Shown here piece after piece: positions 4,333 through 63,761 of a stretch of 64,000 nt of DNA. A program made the position numbers and the translations under genes. The stretch lies in the NCBI GenBank assembly GCA_964188305.1, contig OZ076888.1; one strand, 5' to 3'. The DNA is from Podarcis bocagei (taxonomy: Eukaryota). Within the stretch, counting starts at the first letter, position 1. Each line of letters opens with the position of its first letter. The notes beneath the pieces are model-generated. The model made no database searches. It was not told the DNA's origin and worked only from the letters and a program-made list of their open reading frames with translations.

Positions 4333-5730
4333 CCGTATTTTTCGCCCTATAAGACGCACCGGCCCATAGGACGCACCTAGTTTTCAGGGGGGGAAATCAA
4401 GGAAAAAAATATGATTTCCCCCCCGCAGCTCTGGGAGCAGCGGACGGGCTGCACGCAGCCTGTGCGCTACTCCAAGACCTTCTCCCTGCTTTTGCGGGAG
4501 GTGGCGGAATTCCCCCACCTCCCGCAAAAGCCCACAGGAGCCCCACTTGACTCCTGCGGGCTTTTCGACCAGGAGGGAGAAGGGACTGATTCGGCCAGTC
4601 AGTCCCTTCTCCCTCCTTGGGGAAAAGCCCCCAAGAGCGGCGCGCTCTTTAAAGGGTGCACGGCTCCTGCAGGCTTTTCTAGGAGGTTGGGGAATTCCCC
4701 CCCTCGTAGAAAAGCCAGCAGAAGCCGCGGAGCCCCTTTAAAGAGCGCACGGCTTTTGCCTGCTTTTGCGGGAGGTGGGGGAATTTCCCCATCTCCCGCA
4801 AAAGCCAAAAGGAGGGTTGGAGAGCAGCGGCAAGGCGTCGTGCGCCTTTCTGCTGCCCCCCATCCTCTGGGGCTGGCGATGGGGGAAGCGCTGCTTTCCC
4901 CACCGCCAGCCTCAAACCCGGGTTGGAGAGCAGCGGCAAGGCGTCGCACGCCTTCCTGCTGCCCCCCATCCTCTGGGGCTGGCGATGGGGGAAGCGCTGC
5001 TTTCCCCACCGCCAGCCTCAAACCCGGGTTGGAGAGCAGCGGCAAGGCGTCGCGCGCCTTCCTGCTGCCCCCCATCCTCTGGGGCTGGCGATGGGGGAAG
5101 CGCTGCTTTCCCCACCGCCAGCCTCAAACCCGGGTTGGAGAGCAGCGGCAAGGCGTCGCGCGCCTTCCTGCTGCCCCCCATCCTCTGGGGCTGGCGATGG
5201 GGGAAGTGCTGCTTTCCCCACCGCCAGCCTCAAACCCGGGTTGGAGAGCAGCGGCAAGGCGTCGCGCGCCTTCCTGCTGCCCCCCATCCTCTGGGGCTGG
5301 CGATGGGGGAAGTGCTGCTTTCCCCACCGCCAGCCTCAAACCCGGGTTGGAGAGCAGCGGCAAGGCATCGCGCGCCTTCCTGCTGCCCCCCATCCTCTGG
5401 GGCTGGCGATGGGGGAAGCGCTGCTTTCCCCACCGCCAGCCTCAAACCCGGGTTGGAGAGTAGCAGCAAGGCGTCGCGCGCCTTCCTGCTGCCCCCCATC
5501 CTCTGGGGCTGGCGATGGGGGAAGCGCTGCTTTCCTCCACCGCCAGCCTCAAACAGCAGACTCTCCTGGCTTCAGCGGAAGCAACGCGAAGCCTCCGGAG
5601 CGCAGGCTTCGGAGGCTTCGTGTTGCTATCGCTGAAGCCAAGGAGTCTGCATTCGCCCCATAAGACGCACCCACATTTCCCCTTCATTTTTGGAGGGGGA
5701 AAAGTGCGTCTTATAGGGCGAAAAATACGG
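4333..5730 (+). mobile_element. Non-autonomous Tc1/mariner (Tc2/pogo-like) element, copy 1, with hairpin/minisatellite interior
   Basis: Perfect 27-bp TIR ccgtatttttcgccctataagacgcac; TA duplicated at 4331-4332 and 5731-5732; empty site seen in the second L1 copy (aaaaaggtatttaaatata, about 27062-27080); no transposase. Strand is arbitrary. Confidence 0.93.
4814..5554. repeat. 106-bp GC-rich minisatellite, 7 copies, each with an internal hairpin
   Basis: Unit starts gggttggagag at 4814, 4920, 5026, 5132, 5238, 5344, 5450; internal inverted repeat ggctggcgatgggggaag...ctttccccaccgccagcc. Confidence 0.95.
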
Positions 5731-6289
5731 TACCTTTTTCAATTCATTATATATCATCTCCCAGAAAGCCTTAATCCTTGGGCATGTCCACCAAAGGTGA
5801 AAGAATGTACCTTCAGTTTCTTTACATTTCCAACATTTATTATCGGGCAGATGATAGATTTTTGCAAGCTTGACTGGTGTCATGTACCACTTGTATATCA
5901 TTTTCATAATATTCTCTCTTAGGGCATTACATGCCGTAAATTTCATACCTGTTGTCCACAACTGTTCCCAGTCAGCAAACATAATGTTATGTCCAACATC
6001 TTGTGCCCATTTAATCATAGCAGATTTGACCGTTTCATCCTGAGTATTCCATTTCAACAGCAAGTTATACATCTTTGACAAAATCTTAGTTTTAGGTTCT
6101 AACAGTTCTGTTTCTAGTTTTGATTTTTCCACCTGGAAGCCAATTTTCTTATCCAAGTTATATGCCTCCATTATCTGATAGTAATGTAGCCAGTCTCGCA
6201 CTTTATCTTTTAATTTCTCAAAACTCTGCAGTTTCACTTTGTCTCCTTGTTCCAAAATTTCCCAATATTTTGGCCATTTAGCCTCCATA
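5731..6289 (-). pseudogene. L1 ORF2 remnant containing the CCHC zinc knuckle
   Basis: Part of ORF 5626-6321: MEAKWPKYWEILE...CWKCKETEGTFFHLWWTCPRIKAFWEMIYNELKKV; no stops in this segment. Confidence 0.88.
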
Positions 6290-6644
6290 CAGTGGTACCC
6301 CGCAAGACGAATGCCTCGCAAGACGGAAAACCCGCAAGACGAAAGGGTTTTCTGTTTTGGAGGCGCTTCGCAAGACGAATTTCCCTATGGGCTTGCATCG
6401 CAAGACGAAAGCCCATAGGGAAATGCTGGCGGTCAGGAGCAAAGACTTTCGCCCACAGCCGGCCTTCAGAAGAGGACCTCTTCTGAAGTCCGGCGGGGGG
6501 CAAAAGTCTTTGCTCCCCCCCCCGCCTGCCTCCCCCCCGCCTGCCCCGGGCGATCTTAAAATGCTGGCGGGCGGGAGCGAAGCGTTCGCTGCCGACCCCC
6601 AGCATTTTAAAATCTCCAAGGGACAGCAGAGAAGTCTCTGTCCC

Positions 6645-7010
6645 GGGGAGATTTTAAAATGCTGGGGGTCGGGAGCGAAGCGCTGCAGACCCCCAACATT
6701 TTAAAATCTCCCCGTGTCCTGGGAAGATTTTAAAATGCTGGGGGTCGGGAGCGAAGCGCTGCAGACCCCCAGCATTTTAAAATCTCCCCGTCTCCTGGGA
6801 AGATTTTAAAATGCTGGGGGTCGGGAGCGAAGCGCTGCAGACCCCCAGCATTTTAAAATCTCCCCGTGTCCTGGGAAGATTTTAAAATGCTGGGGGTCGG
6901 GAGCGAAGCGCTGCCGACCCCCAGCATTTTAAAACCTCCCCGGGACACGGGGAGATTTTAAAATGCTGGGGGTCGGCAGCGCTTCGCTCCCAACCCCCAG
7001 CATTTTAAAA
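6645..7010. repeat. About 66-bp palindromic tandem repeat, about 5.5 units, last unit inverted
   Basis: Unit ggg[g/a]agattttaaaatgctgggggtc-gggagcgaagcgctgca-gacccccagcattttaaaatctcccc-gtgtcct with about 26-bp arms. Confidence 0.9.
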
Positions 7011-7011
7011 C

Positions 7012-7646
7012 GCTGTTCCGAAGTGGGGCGGGGGGGCGGGGACACCTGGCCCCGCCGCCCCACTTCAGAAAGCTCTTCCGAAGTGGGGAGGGGGGCGGGA
7101 ACACCTGGCCCCGCCGCCCCACTTCGGAAAGCTCTTCCGAAGTGGGGAGGGGGGGGCGGGAACACCTGGCCCCGCCGCCCCACTTCGGAAAGCTCTTCCG
7201 AAGTGGGGAGGGGGGGGCGGGAACACCTGGCCCCGCCGCCCCACTTCGGAAAGCTCTTCCGAAGTGGGGAGGGGGGGCGGGAACACCTGGCCCCGCCGCC
7301 CCACTTCGGAAAGCTCTTCCGAAGTGGGGAGGGGGGGCGGGAACACCTGGCCCCGCCGCCCCACTTCGGAAAGCTCTTCCGAAGTGGGGAGGGGGGGCGG
7401 GAACACCTGGCCCCGCCGCCCCACTTCGGAAAGCTCTTCCGAAGTGGGGAGGGGGGGCGGGAACACCTGGCCCCGCCGCCCCACTTCGGAAAGCTCTTCC
7501 GAAGTGGGGAGGGGGGGCGGGAACACCTGGCCCCGCTGCCCCACTTCGGAAAGCTGTTCCGAAGTGGGGCGGGGGGGCGGGGACACCTGCCCCATCCGCC
7601 CCACTTCGGAAAGCTGTTCCGAAGTGGGGCGGGGGGCGGGAACACC
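7012..7646. repeat. 60-bp palindromic G-rich minisatellite, about 10.5 copies
   Basis: Unit gctcttccgaagtggggagggggggcgggaacacctggccccgccgccccacttcggaaa; lines 7261-7500 are identical; arms ttccgaagtgggg / ccccacttcggaa. Confidence 0.95.
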
Positions 7647-8308
7647 TTCTGAAGGCGGGCAGGGGGCGAAAGTCTTTGTCCCCCCTGCCTGCCTTCCCAG
7701 GGGCTTTTAAATCGCCCCGGACAGCGGAGAAGTCCTCCGCTGTCCGGAGCGATTTTAAAATGCCGCCCGCCAGCATTTTAAGATAGCCCCGCACAGCGGA
7801 GAAGTCCTCCGCTGTCCCAGTGTTTTTTAAAATGCTGGGGGTGGGAAGAAAAGCCCTTGTCCCCCCCCCCAGCCTTCAGAAGAGGTCCAGGGACAGACTG
7901 TCCCCGGACCTGGTCTGAAGTCGGTTTCCCTAGGAACGCATTAATTGATTTTCAATGCATTCCTATGGGAAACCGTGCATCGCAAGACGAAAAAACCGCA
8001 AGACGAAGAGAATTGCGGAACGAATTAATTTCGTCTTGCGAGGCACCACTGTATTAAGTTTTTTCTGAGCCCATTTGCCACGAGTCTTTCAAAGCATAAC
8101 CCTACAGTATTTAGACAAAGATATATGCCATTTATGGGTAGGAAAGTATTGTTTCATTAACTGAGGCTGCAATCCTAGTTTCACTTGCCTGAGAGTTGAA
8201 TTCAGTGGAATTTACTTAGGAGTAGGCATGGTTAGGATTGTGCTATTCATCTCTCTTTAATGATGTGTGTGTGCAAGGAACAATGCATTTACATTGTAAT
8301 AGATGAGT

Positions 8309-41734: not shown

Positions 41735-41873
41735 NNNNNNNNNNNNNNNNNNNNNNNNNNNNNNNNNNNNNNNNNNNNNNNNNNNNNNNNNNNNNNNNNN
41801 NNNNNNNNNNNNNNNNNNNNNNNNNNNNNNNNNNNNNNNNNNNNNNNNNNNNNNNNNNNNNNNNNNNNNNNNN
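41735..41873. other. Assembly gap (139 N)
   Basis: Run of n. Confidence 1.
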
Positions 41874-60219: not shown

Positions 60220-60549
60220 TGAAATATACGAGAGTGGATTTCATGCTCTTTATTCAGCTCACAGTGGTGAGGAGGAATGGAATTTCCCCCCAGAATGTCT
60301 GCTTTATATACATTATTTACACAATGGGCCCCACGTGATCCCTAATTCTGGGATTCTCCTGTAGGCCAATCAGGTTGCGGATTCACTTCCACCTGGAGCT
60401 GGATTGGGTGGCTCCTGTGGACCAATCAGGCTGCTGCATTCTGGATCCAATTTTTCTAGGACCAATCAGACTGCTGCATTCTGAAGCCTATTGTTCTAGG
60501 ACCAATCAGACTGCTGTATTTTGGATCCTATTCAATTCAGTACATAACA
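60220..60549 (-). mobile_element. Solo LTR (330 bp), probably from a Gypsy-like retroelement
   Basis: TG...CA termini; 5-bp TSD tatag at 60215-60219 and 60550-60554; on the minus strand three 40-bp CCAAT repeats, then TATATAAA (60303-60310), then AATAAA (60249-60254). Confidence 0.85.
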
Positions 60550-60641
60550 TATAGCATGCAGATTTCATGGAGCAGCAGTAAACTCATGCAGAACACAATT
60601 AAAATGTTGGTGTGTTTAGTGGGAAGGGCATGTGCCATATA

Positions 60642-62138
60642 CCGTATTTTTCGCCCCATAAGACGCACTTTTTCCCCTCCAAAAATGAAGGGGAAATGTG
60701 CCTGCGTCTTATGGGGCGAATGCAGGCTTTCGCTGAAGCCTGGAGAGCGAGGGGGGTCGGTGCGTACCGACCCCTCTCGCTCTCCAGGCTTCAGGAAGCT
60801 CTGCGCAACCCTCGGGAGACCGCCCCGCTCCCGGTGGCCCTGCAGAGCTGCCTGCGCTCCTGGGACCAGCGCAGCTCTGCCCGGCCACCGGGAGCCGGGG
60901 GAGAAGCTCCGCCCCGCTCCCGGTGGCCCTGCAGAGCTGCCTGCGCTCCTGGGACCAGCGCAGCTCTGCCCGGCCACCGGGAGCCGGGGGAGAAGCTCCG
61001 CCCCGCTCCCGGTGGCCCTGCAGAGCTGCCTGCGCTCCTGGGACCAGCGCAGCTCTGCGCCGCCATCCCGAGCGGGGCGCTAAGTCCCGCCCCGCTCGGG
61101 ATGGCGGCACAGAGCTGCCTGCCGTCGCGGGACTGCAGGCAGGTCTACGCCGCCATCCCGAGCGGTGCGCTAAGTCCCGCCCCGCTCGGGATGGCGGCAC
61201 AGATCTGCCTGCCGTCGCGGGACCGCAGGCAGGTCTACGCCGCCATCCCGAGCGGTGCGCTAAGTCCCGCCCCGCTCGGGATGGCGGCAGAGATCTGCCT
61301 GCCGTCGCGGGACCGCAGGCAGGTCTACGCCGCCATCCCGAGCGGTGCGCTAAGTCCCGCCCCGCTCGGGATGGCGGCACAGATCTGCCTGCCGTCGCGG
61401 GACCGCAGGCAGGTCTACGCCGCCATCCCGAGCGGTGCGCTAAGTCCCGCCCCGCTCGGGATGGCGGCACAGATCTGCCTGCCGTCGCGGGACCGCAGGC
61501 AGGTCTACGCCGCCATCCCGAGCGGTGCGCTAAGTCCCGCCCCGCTCGGGATGGCGGCAGAGATCTGCCTGCCGTCGCGGGACCGCAGGCAGGTCTACGC
61601 CGCCATCCCGAGCGGTGCGCTAAGTCCCGCCCCGCTGGGATGGCGGCAGAGATCTGCCTGCCGTCGCGGGACCGCAGGCAGGTCTACGCCGCCATCCCGA
61701 GCGGTGCGCTAAGTCCCGCCCCGCTGGGATGGCGGCAGAGATCTGCCTGCCGTCGCGGGACTGCAGGCAGGTCTACGCCGCCATCCCGAGCGGTGCGCTA
61801 AGTCCCGCCCCACTCGGGATGGCGGCAGAGATCTGCCTGCCGTCGCGGGACCGCAGGCAGGTCTACGCCGCCATCACGAGCGGGGCGCTAAGTCCCGCCC
61901 CGCTCGGGATGGCGGCACAGAGCTGCCTGCCATCGCGGGACTGGTGCACTTCTCCCCATCGCCAGCCCCACAAGCTCGGGGGACAGCGGGGAGGCAGAGC
62001 GTGCCTTCCCACTGTTCCCCGACCTGGTTCTTCCAGCCCCGCACCTGGGGGGGAAATAAATTTTTTTTTCTTTATTTCCCCCCCAAAAAACTAGGTGCGT
62101 CTTATGGGCCGGAGCGTCTTATGGGGCGCAAAATACGG
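60642..62138 (-). mobile_element. Non-autonomous Tc2/pogo-like element, copy 2, inverted relative to 4333-5730 and with a different interior
   Basis: TA|ccgtatttttcgccccataagacgc ... gcgtcttatggggcgcaaaatacgg|TA; about 85 bp at each end match copy 1. Confidence 0.93.
60821..61943. repeat. 89-90-bp palindromic CpG-rich minisatellite, about 12.5 units of two sequence types in one register
   Basis: Unit starts (cgcccc[g/a]ct) at 60821, 60910, 60999 (type A) and 61088, 61178, 61268, 61358, 61448, 61538, 61628, 61717, 61806, 61896 (type B). Confidence 0.95.
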
Positions 62139-63761
62139 TACCTTGCAATTGCTCTGTGATGCTAAGAAGCTCTTGGGATGGAACCCTAGATAAAAGGTTT
62201 GGATGTTTCTGCACCAGTTTATGGCATGAGGTAGATATCCATTCTATTCCCCCACAATTCTGCCACCTCTCACCTGTATCCTCCCCCCCCCCATTCCACT
62301 TTGTATACAATGGCAATATTTGAAATGGGAATCTGCACCCTTTAGTAAATCCCTTGGACCAGACTTGTGTGGTTTTGGTAGCGTGAAACGGTCCCTTCTG
62401 GGAGGTGTAGCTACTGATGCAATGTGGAGTAACGATGGGCAGAAGCCAGCCTGGCAGCCTGGTTTTCTTCTCTTGGTGCAGGCAATATCTGCAACAGTAA
62501 CGTAAAAGGCTCCAAATGCAGGCGTTGGCCAGTGAGACCGGTTGCAGCAAACAGGCAGCTTTGCTTCCCCTTTTACTGTGTGTATTTTATTTTATGTTAC
62601 TTCAGTCTCTGCTGAAGGTATGGCTATGTATCTCCTGATCACGTAGGTTTCCAAATGCTGGCTTTATTACCATGGGTTGGAAAGCCGAATAACATTCAAA
62701 CTGCCAAGGAAAAGGAAAACCTTGATTGTGCCCAAACTGTCCAGGAATCTGCTGGCTTCTCAGTCCTTGGCTTTGGAGTATGTTGTTCTGCCTTTATGAA
62801 ACTGAAAGGCTGGTTCCAGGATTCTTTTTTGGGGGGTGGGGGGCATCGTGTAAGATCCATCAGTGAGTCTCTTACCCAGTGAAAGATAGTAGGGAGAGAG
62901 GACATTTATTTATCCCTTCCAGGTGTCCCAGCACCCTTCCTCACCTTTGCATCACACTCCTGCAATCTCTTAGTTTCCCAGTGGGGTGGGAGAAATCTCA
63001 CCCCATCTCCCCTGTTCTCTGTGCACTCCTAAGGGAGTTGGAGGAAGGTTACTTTCGTGTTATGCTAGGCTCCTGAGAAGGCCAGAGCAGGGCTGCTTTT
63101 GTTTTTCCTGGTAACCTTGTGCGTAGTGTGAAAATAGCAACCTCGCCAGCTTGATGGGCCCTTCAGAAACCTCTTAACTCACGTTTCCCAAGCTGTGATT
63201 GCTGCCATTATGTTATATTACAATAGCCAGCGCTACTTCATGTTTTATAAGCTTGGAAGCATTTAAGCATCAGAGTGTAGAAACCTGACTGAGAACAAGG
63301 GTGGGTGGGTGGGTGGGTGTGCAGAAGAATTATTGGGCGCAAGTGCAACATGGTCATGCCATCATGTTCATTCCTTGCAATGACATGGATGAAAGCCAGA
63401 GCCTGCATTTCCTGTCCTCAGTCCCTCTCTGGAGTGTCATTCCACAGAGCTGGCATAGATTTGAGCCCAGCAGGCATGGGGTTCCAAAAGCTTCATTACC
63501 TACAGTGCACCTCTAGGAAGTAAAAGGGCTCCTGCTGTTTTATGTACAGAGTGCTCTATTAAAGAACACTATTACAGCCCCCGGCGGGGTGGTGGCGATG
63601 GATGGTGGAAGATGCATTTTGCATGGCTGATCGGTACCGGCAGGAACTTGCTGCTCTTGTATTTGCACGTGGAGATTATTTGGTGCTATGGTTCAAGGGC
63701 AGGTGTGTTTAATAATTCCACAGGAGTTCGTGGCAGTGGTGATGCATGGCACTTCCATATA

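Follow-up and report, generated by a model that had tools for sequence, protein, structure and literature searches.

The array at 60820-61943 consists of two related types of palindromic unit, A and B, whose sequence differences are mirrored between the two arms of the hairpin that each unit forms. This mirrored pattern is real and lies far from chance expectation, and it amounts effectively to one lineage contrast, the single split between A and B. Most likely, it is the footprint of arm copying during DNA synthesis and not of selection for an RNA fold. We put at roughly 60% the probability that the mirrored arms were produced by DNA-level copying of one arm from the other, starting from one ancestral unit that was already palindromic. 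All coordinates refer to the window, that is, the whole 64-kb stretch of DNA that was analysed.

The units were delimited by cutting at a motif common to both types, CCGCCCC[GA]CT. The array then resolves into two A units, one A/B junction unit, nine B units and a 49-bp B stub, and TRF described it as 3.4 copies of 89 bp (91%) and 9.9 copies of 90 bp (97%). Its features are as follows.

60820-60997, plus strand: two type-A units, identical to each other, 89 bp each, starting at 60820 and 60909
60820-60997, plus strand: type-A fold, with outer arms of 13 bp and an inner stem of 10 bp + 3 bp with a 4-nt bulge
60998-61086, plus strand: A/B junction unit, 89 bp, with A sequence up to ...GCAGCTCTGC at 61058 and the B right arm and spacer from GCCGCCATCCC at 61059
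61050-61118, unstranded: junction hairpin across the unit boundary, -42.3 kcal/mol, z -11.9, with a 21-bp perfect stem + 8 bp
61087-61894, plus strand: nine type-B units of 89-90 bp, with starts from 61087 to 61805
61087-61894, plus strand: type-B fold, with outer arms of 17 bp and an inner stem of 12 bp including one T.G pair
61895-61943, plus strand: tenth B unit, truncated to 49 bp and stopping in the apical loop

The A arms, GCTCCCGGTGGCC and GGCCACCGGGAGC, are exact in every copy, with five mismatch-free occurrences in a gapless search that covered both orientations. For the B arms, CCGCTCGGGATGGCGGC and GCCGCCATCCCGAGCGG, the same kind of search returned 18 occurrences, 16 without mismatch and two with one mismatch, and it missed the left arms of units 61627 and 61716, each of which carries a 1-bp deletion. 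The arms quoted in the initial annotation are thus exact in A and in most copies of B. No further A or B units or arm blocks were present in the window outside the array, nor was a donor for the A-specific block found there.

Each unit is laid out as left arm, loop, right arm and spacer, which together form a near-complete palindrome, and the palindromic array can be read in two registers, either within the unit or across the junction (right arm, spacer and next left arm). In the junction register, 61059 is precisely where a B right arm starts, and with it the B part, which closes after a B left arm; the third A left arm pairs with the A right arm that precedes it. Every arm of the array therefore has a matching partner in this register, and unit 60998 is chimeric in the within-unit register only. 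Its earlier description as an A-left/B-right chimera holds for the one register and not for the other, and the hairpin that had been noticed across the junction at 61050-61118 was recovered with the perfect stem listed above. The switch from A to B could be located to one or two bases, in columns 61 to 63 of the unit alignment. This region is the most divergent part of the unit, and the long identical tracts lie elsewhere (columns 1-11 and 29-36). A simple homologous crossover between A and B at 61058/61059 therefore looks unlikely, the switch lying in this most divergent stretch and outside the long shared tracts.

That A and B are homologous and in the same register, as had been claimed from inspection, is well borne out. 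They are identical at 62 of 89 positions, about 7.7 SD above shuffles. The global alignment score is 32, whereas 2,000 dinucleotide shuffles scored -50 +/- 11, and significance also holds for either half of the unit when it is taken separately and aligned in direct orientation. In the loop the homology is thin (GGGAC and AAG..CCGCCCC). Unit length (89 versus 90), register and symmetry centre (around position 42-44) coincide in the two types. Folded as single-stranded DNA, the A unit (-37.9 kcal/mol, z -5.5) and the B unit (-43.0 kcal/mol, z -10) each give a nearly full-length hairpin, and RNA parameters or the opposite strand give the same folding picture for A, B and the junction. Since both units are palindromic and homologous to each other, mirrored differences between them follow by definition. 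What calls for explanation in the A/B case is how the palindromy was kept or remade, be it by selection on the fold or by re-templating of an arm.

For the pair table, the A and B structures were both projected onto the A/B alignment. Of the 24 pairs that both types have, 19 are the same, five differ on both sides and none differs on one side only, in agreement with the initial report of at least four left-arm changes matched in the right arm. Read from A to B, three of the five are C:G to G:C, one is G:C to A:T and one is G:C to T.G. A count of five two-sided pairs was reached by 1 of 500 shuffles and slid controls gave 0-2, and the probability that 10 changed stem positions fill exactly five pairs by chance is P = 6.5e-6. 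The mirrored changes are also clustered: 7 of the 12 left-half differences between A and B fall in columns 12-23, a 12-bp block adjoining 11 identical columns. The outer-arm block of A and that of B are each the exact reverse complement of their own partner, as a template-switch footprint should be. Relative to A, the 2x2 internal loop of B is displaced inwards by two positions, which is a block shift and not a set of point changes. It had been proposed that G-U-tolerant changes confined to one strand would speak for RNA structure, and clustered, strictly Watson-Crick mirroring for DNA template switching. The wobble pairs of B (one on the plus strand, two on the minus strand) favour neither strand, and the mirroring is of the clustered kind, with C:G to G:C changes in the majority.

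The array makes up the interior of an element of 1,497 bp (60642-62138) that has terminal inverted repeats (TIRs) and is flanked by TA on both sides. From end to end this element is a chain of hairpins. Outside the array it contains the following features.

60640-60641, unstranded: left TA target-site duplication, supported by empty-site contigs of two DNA runs (X1 and X5) with the joint 60639 to 62139; the second copy in the window is also TA-flanked
60642-60668, plus strand: left TIR, CCGTATTTTTCGCCCCATAAGACGCAC, 25/27 against the right end in reverse complement and common to the copy at 4333-5730
60650-60720, unstranded: subterminal hairpin with 18-bp perfect arms (60650-60667 and 60703-60720) and an 11-bp hairpin nested within
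60733-60794, unstranded: left-chassis hairpin with 29-nt arms, complementarity 97%, built on the GCTGAAGCC segment
61970-62028, unstranded: family tail hairpin with 27-nt arms, 81% complementary, a decayed paralogue of the array arms
62046-62085, unstranded: G7AAAT hairpin with 15-bp perfect arms
62112-62138, minus strand: right TIR, 25/27 against 60642-60668 in reverse complement
62139-62140, unstranded: right TA target-site duplication, at the 60639 to 62139 joint of the contigs

The element is bounded by TIRs and a TA duplication, its empty site is precise, it lacks coding capacity (its only ORFs are repeat read-throughs) and its copy number is high, with two copies in the window. These tested features class it as a non-autonomous TIR transposon with a TA target (MITE) and, by that target, probably Tc1-mariner-like. 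No autonomous copy of the family lies in the 64-kb window, the 71-aa ORF of the tail has no word-sharing relative in the protein index, and a scan of public metagenome contigs with the 27-nt TIR gave 0 matches. Contigs of X1 and X5, public DNA runs from two related organisms, join 60639 to 62139 and so skip 1,499 bases; they are near-identical to the flanks in the window, with 0-5 differing letters and up to 2 small gaps. The presence of an empty site in related organisms means that the insertion at 60642-62138 is young or polymorphic. The high CpG o/e of the array fits a young age (GC 0.74 and CpG o/e 0.94 in the array; GC 0.46 and CpG o/e 0.37 in the window).

In each of the three DNA runs, many contigs pass from 60796 to about 61954 over no more than 2-10 letters, and many copies of the family are therefore without the A/B array. 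Summed word depth in the three runs is about 1e6 for the chassis, against 9-89 for the right flank, which is unique. The bins of A and the first bin of B have 1.5e3-1.1e5, which indicates that A-like and B-like units are present elsewhere in all three genomes. The MITE belongs to a very abundant wall-lizard family, and the array is the GC-rich interior cargo of a young copy. To the host genome, it is no more than an ordinary MITE insertion of young age. The sequence to the left of the insertion (60300-60639) is itself a very abundant repeat, with a summed word depth of about 1e6 in the three runs; within it lies a tandem of 40 bp x 2.8 (60419-60532), and RNA reads map to it in both directions. 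Elsewhere in the window there is a run of 139 N at 41735-41873.

A second copy of the chassis lies at 4333-5730 on the minus strand, with the same ends and flanked by TA. Its interior holds a different array, seven 106-bp units (4814-5554, 98% alike) with two hairpins each. Further chained hairpins are found at 4440-4810 of this copy, and contigs of X1 suggest that tandem repeats of the tail module are frequent in the MITE family. The GCTGAAGCC segment forms a different hairpin in each of the two chassis copies, its inverted copy lying downstream in one and upstream in the other. At about 6250-7950 there is a third hairpin-rich element, the ends of which differ from those of the MITE chassis, and in which a 60-bp x 10.6 array (7012-7647) comes after a 76-bp hairpin array (6639-7010). 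The direction of the 76-bp array reverses near 6940: unit 6956 is the reverse complement of unit 6880, and a palindromic spacer joins both. Inverted duplication at the DNA level is thus directly visible in this neighbouring hairpin array.

Recent changes within the array are not mirrored. The nine full B units have seven variable columns, four of them in stems (G to A in column 8, a 1-bp deletion in column 11 of two units, G/T in column 28 and C to A in column 72), and none of the four is matched by a change in the partner column. Three of them break a pair, and the G to T change in column 28 converts a G.G mismatch to a T.G pair; the pair 28:57 reads G:C in A, while the B units have G.G at the edges of the array and T.G further in. 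Variable columns make up 4 of 70 paired and 3 of 20 unpaired columns, a difference that is not significant (P = 0.18). The first and last B units keep A-like states (G in column 28, T in column 48) that are lost from most inner units, as is usual where the edges of an array escape homogenisation. The A at 61147, in the internal loop of the B right arm, is mostly G in contigs of other copies, among the variants listed; G has all the depth in X10 and about half of it in X1 and X5, and with G the stem would gain a C:G pair that type A also has.

The hairpins of the chassis allow a comparison over a longer time. Between the tail hairpin and its homologue in the second copy, 19 pairs show five one-sided and two two-sided differences (A:T and G:C), and in the G7AAAT hairpin the two-copy comparison gave one A:T to C:G swap. 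The older hairpins of the MITE family thus lose complementarity, and the tail hairpin is decaying. There is also a link between the array and this tail. The sequence CGCCGCCATCCCG is the B right arm and, in other family copies, the right arm of the tail hairpin; in organism G, 33 contigs run on past 61995 with a consensus that contains CGCCGCCATCCCG. B and this tail-continuation consensus have a 13-mer in common, and a shared word of at least 12 letters was found in 3 of 5,000 shuffles of B. The B right arm is thus no new sequence, and the array units are paralogous to the family tail hairpin. When A and B are aligned locally to the 106-bp unit and to the tail module, the scores are 15-19 only and too weak by themselves, so the link of B to the tail rests on the shared 13-mer.

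From this material we infer a template-switch mechanism and an order of events for the array. The ancestor of A and B would have been a single unit, already palindromic; one of its arms would have acquired a new outer-arm block, of which the other arm then received a reverse-complement copy. This may have come about by intrastrand template switching, by fold-back synthesis where a polymerase had stalled or by mismatch correction in an extruded hairpin, any of which would restore a perfect stem in one event. Each unit type may have multiplied afterwards by tandem duplication or unequal exchange. With two possible partners for each arm, one within the unit and one across the junction, a new arm version could spread unit by unit, and the A/B boundary at 61058/61059 would be the point where that spread stops. 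It is a rather unlikely extension of this scheme that the family as a whole undergoes a zipper-like concerted evolution, in which a re-templated arm would be passed arm by arm along palindromic arrays to give sharply bounded types. If this were true, the family, whose A-like and B-like units number in the hundreds per genome and whose chassis copies number in the tens of thousands, would be a natural system for vertebrate germline template-switch rates.

Template switching has been documented to leave perfect stems, to make compensatory changes of several bases and to invert loops (PMC8794818, PMC5453318), and stepwise compensatory evolution is expected to proceed mainly via G.U or G.T (PMC8794818). 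Re-templating is favoured over selection on the fold by the three C:G to G:C swaps among the five two-sided changes, for which there is no G.U or G.T intermediate. The concentration of the changes in the 12-bp block and the block shift of the internal loop favour it too. So do the stem variants of B that have no mirrored partner, since they indicate that no compensation is ongoing. The decay of the tail hairpin with age argues against fold selection, and the reversed 76-bp array, together with the two GCTGAAGCC hairpins, supports re-templating in that inverted duplication operates in arrays of this kind. There are counterpoints. Fold selection would also give perfect stems in both types, pair 28:57 looks like a stepwise, wobble-type partial repair, the non-significant depletion of stem variants (P = 0.18) points in the direction that selection predicts, and the A-specific block is without a donor within the window. 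Because the window offers a single A/B contrast, with no outgroup or ancestral state, a single-event origin of the mirrored block cannot be shown.

Selection on the fold was the other of the two explanations offered by the initial annotation. It would have RNA stem-loops (siRNA, piRNA or miRNA-like precursors) or helpful DNA cruciforms keep their pairing by ordinary compensatory substitutions, and it could explain why long perfect stems persist in both types despite about 30% divergence, why 0 of 24 shared pairs changed on one side only, and why a T.G pair has come to stand at columns 28:57 in place of a G.G mismatch. We nevertheless consider it distinctly improbable. Also in its favour, generic miRNA-precursor models match the array at 30-51 bits on both strands. 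These are matches to unrelated miRNA models, equally good on either strand, and in an Rfam search at a permissive E-value no family attained its gathering score (best match 51 bits against a gathering score of 142). A known structured RNA or miRNA precursor was rejected on this basis, all Rfam matches being far under the gathering score and present on both strands. The C:G to G:C changes have no wobble path, the wobble pairs have no strand preference, the recent stem variants of B went without a change in the partner, and the family's own tail hairpin is decaying. Moreover, the array is absent from many family copies and hence dispensable for transposition. In one RNA-seq run from organism G, the array received 0-4 reads per bin, and the chassis ends had 70-230 reads per strand per bin, in both directions. 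Given that DNA depth on the array stands to that on the chassis at roughly 1:50 to 1:850 in this organism, so few reads on the array are what the chassis background leads one to expect, and they speak neither for nor against expression of the hairpins. Of the two original explanations, re-templating thus fits better, and fold selection has found no positive support.

A different way to obtain mirrored arms is to inherit them. The A and B hairpins might have been born independently, each by its own fold-back of half-units that had already diverged, or the B hairpin might have been imported whole from another copy. In other family copies, the core of the B right arm does serve as an arm of the tail hairpin, the switch at 61058/61059 separates hairpin modules and falls where A and B diverge most, other contigs join A to B elsewhere (60899 or 60988 to 61795), and the loops of A and B have little homology beyond GGGAC and AAG..CCGCCCC. 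Two independent fold-backs, however, would not be expected to yield the same unit length, register and symmetry centre, and the halves of the unit are each homologous in direct orientation. We regard such an origin as somewhat unlikely; it is also a DNA-templating process and overlaps with re-templating. It is scarcely credible that the pattern is an assembly artefact, with reads from different copies of an abundant repeat mis-joined or collapsed. The family is extremely abundant (summed chassis word depth around 1e6), and none of the listed contigs covers the whole stretch. Against this, each of three independent DNA runs, from as many organisms, has contigs with A-like and B-like units, there are short contigs whose best placement is on the A-to-B transition or on the array-to-tail junction, and the right flank is unique, with both flanks fitting the empty-site contigs to within 0-5 differing letters and up to 2 small gaps.

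Mirrored stem changes are usually taken as proof of a functional RNA structure. Here, a palindromic array borne by a transposon yields the same mirrored pattern without evidence of RNA function, and the locus is therefore a warning for covariation-based screens of the lizard genome. The MITE family may, in addition, offer unusually dense material on the making and repair of hairpins by template switching.

MITEs with internal tandem repeats or satellites have been described before, among them Xmix/Xstir in Xenopus laevis, the Tc1-mariner MITE miDNA4 in X. tropicalis and pearl/CvA in bivalves (PMC9659126, PMC12628747). Like these, the lizard element is short and non-coding, has TIRs, belongs to an abundant family and has an interior expanded into a tandem array that is present in some family members and absent from others. 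Unlike them, its unit is itself a near-complete palindrome, and two mirror-differing types stand in one array. In their clustered multi-base differences and exact reverse-complement arms, A and B resemble the template-switch and quasi-palindrome cases of Loytynoja and Goldman (2017, PMC5453318) and Monttinen and Loytynoja (2022, PMC8794818), and further likenesses are the stems that are perfect after the change and the inverted unit in the sister array. Those studies infer events on trees with ancestral states, whereas here there is a single contrast and no outgroup, and their substrates were an RNA gene or unique DNA, whereas here it is a transposon-borne minisatellite. Foldback elements (Drosophila FB; Tetris, PMC4079207 as cited in PMC9659126) are likewise hairpin-forming, repeat-rich mobile DNA that seeds tandem arrays. 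They have long terminal inverted repeats made of tandem units, whereas the lizard element has 27-nt TIRs and an internal array in one direction. The 27-nt TIRs and the interior-only, single-direction array rule out a foldback element. The element belongs with the MITEs bearing internal tandem arrays and is of an already known kind. Its two mirror-differing palindromic unit types are a particular feature and not a new kind of system, and they provide a good illustration of templated stem evolution.
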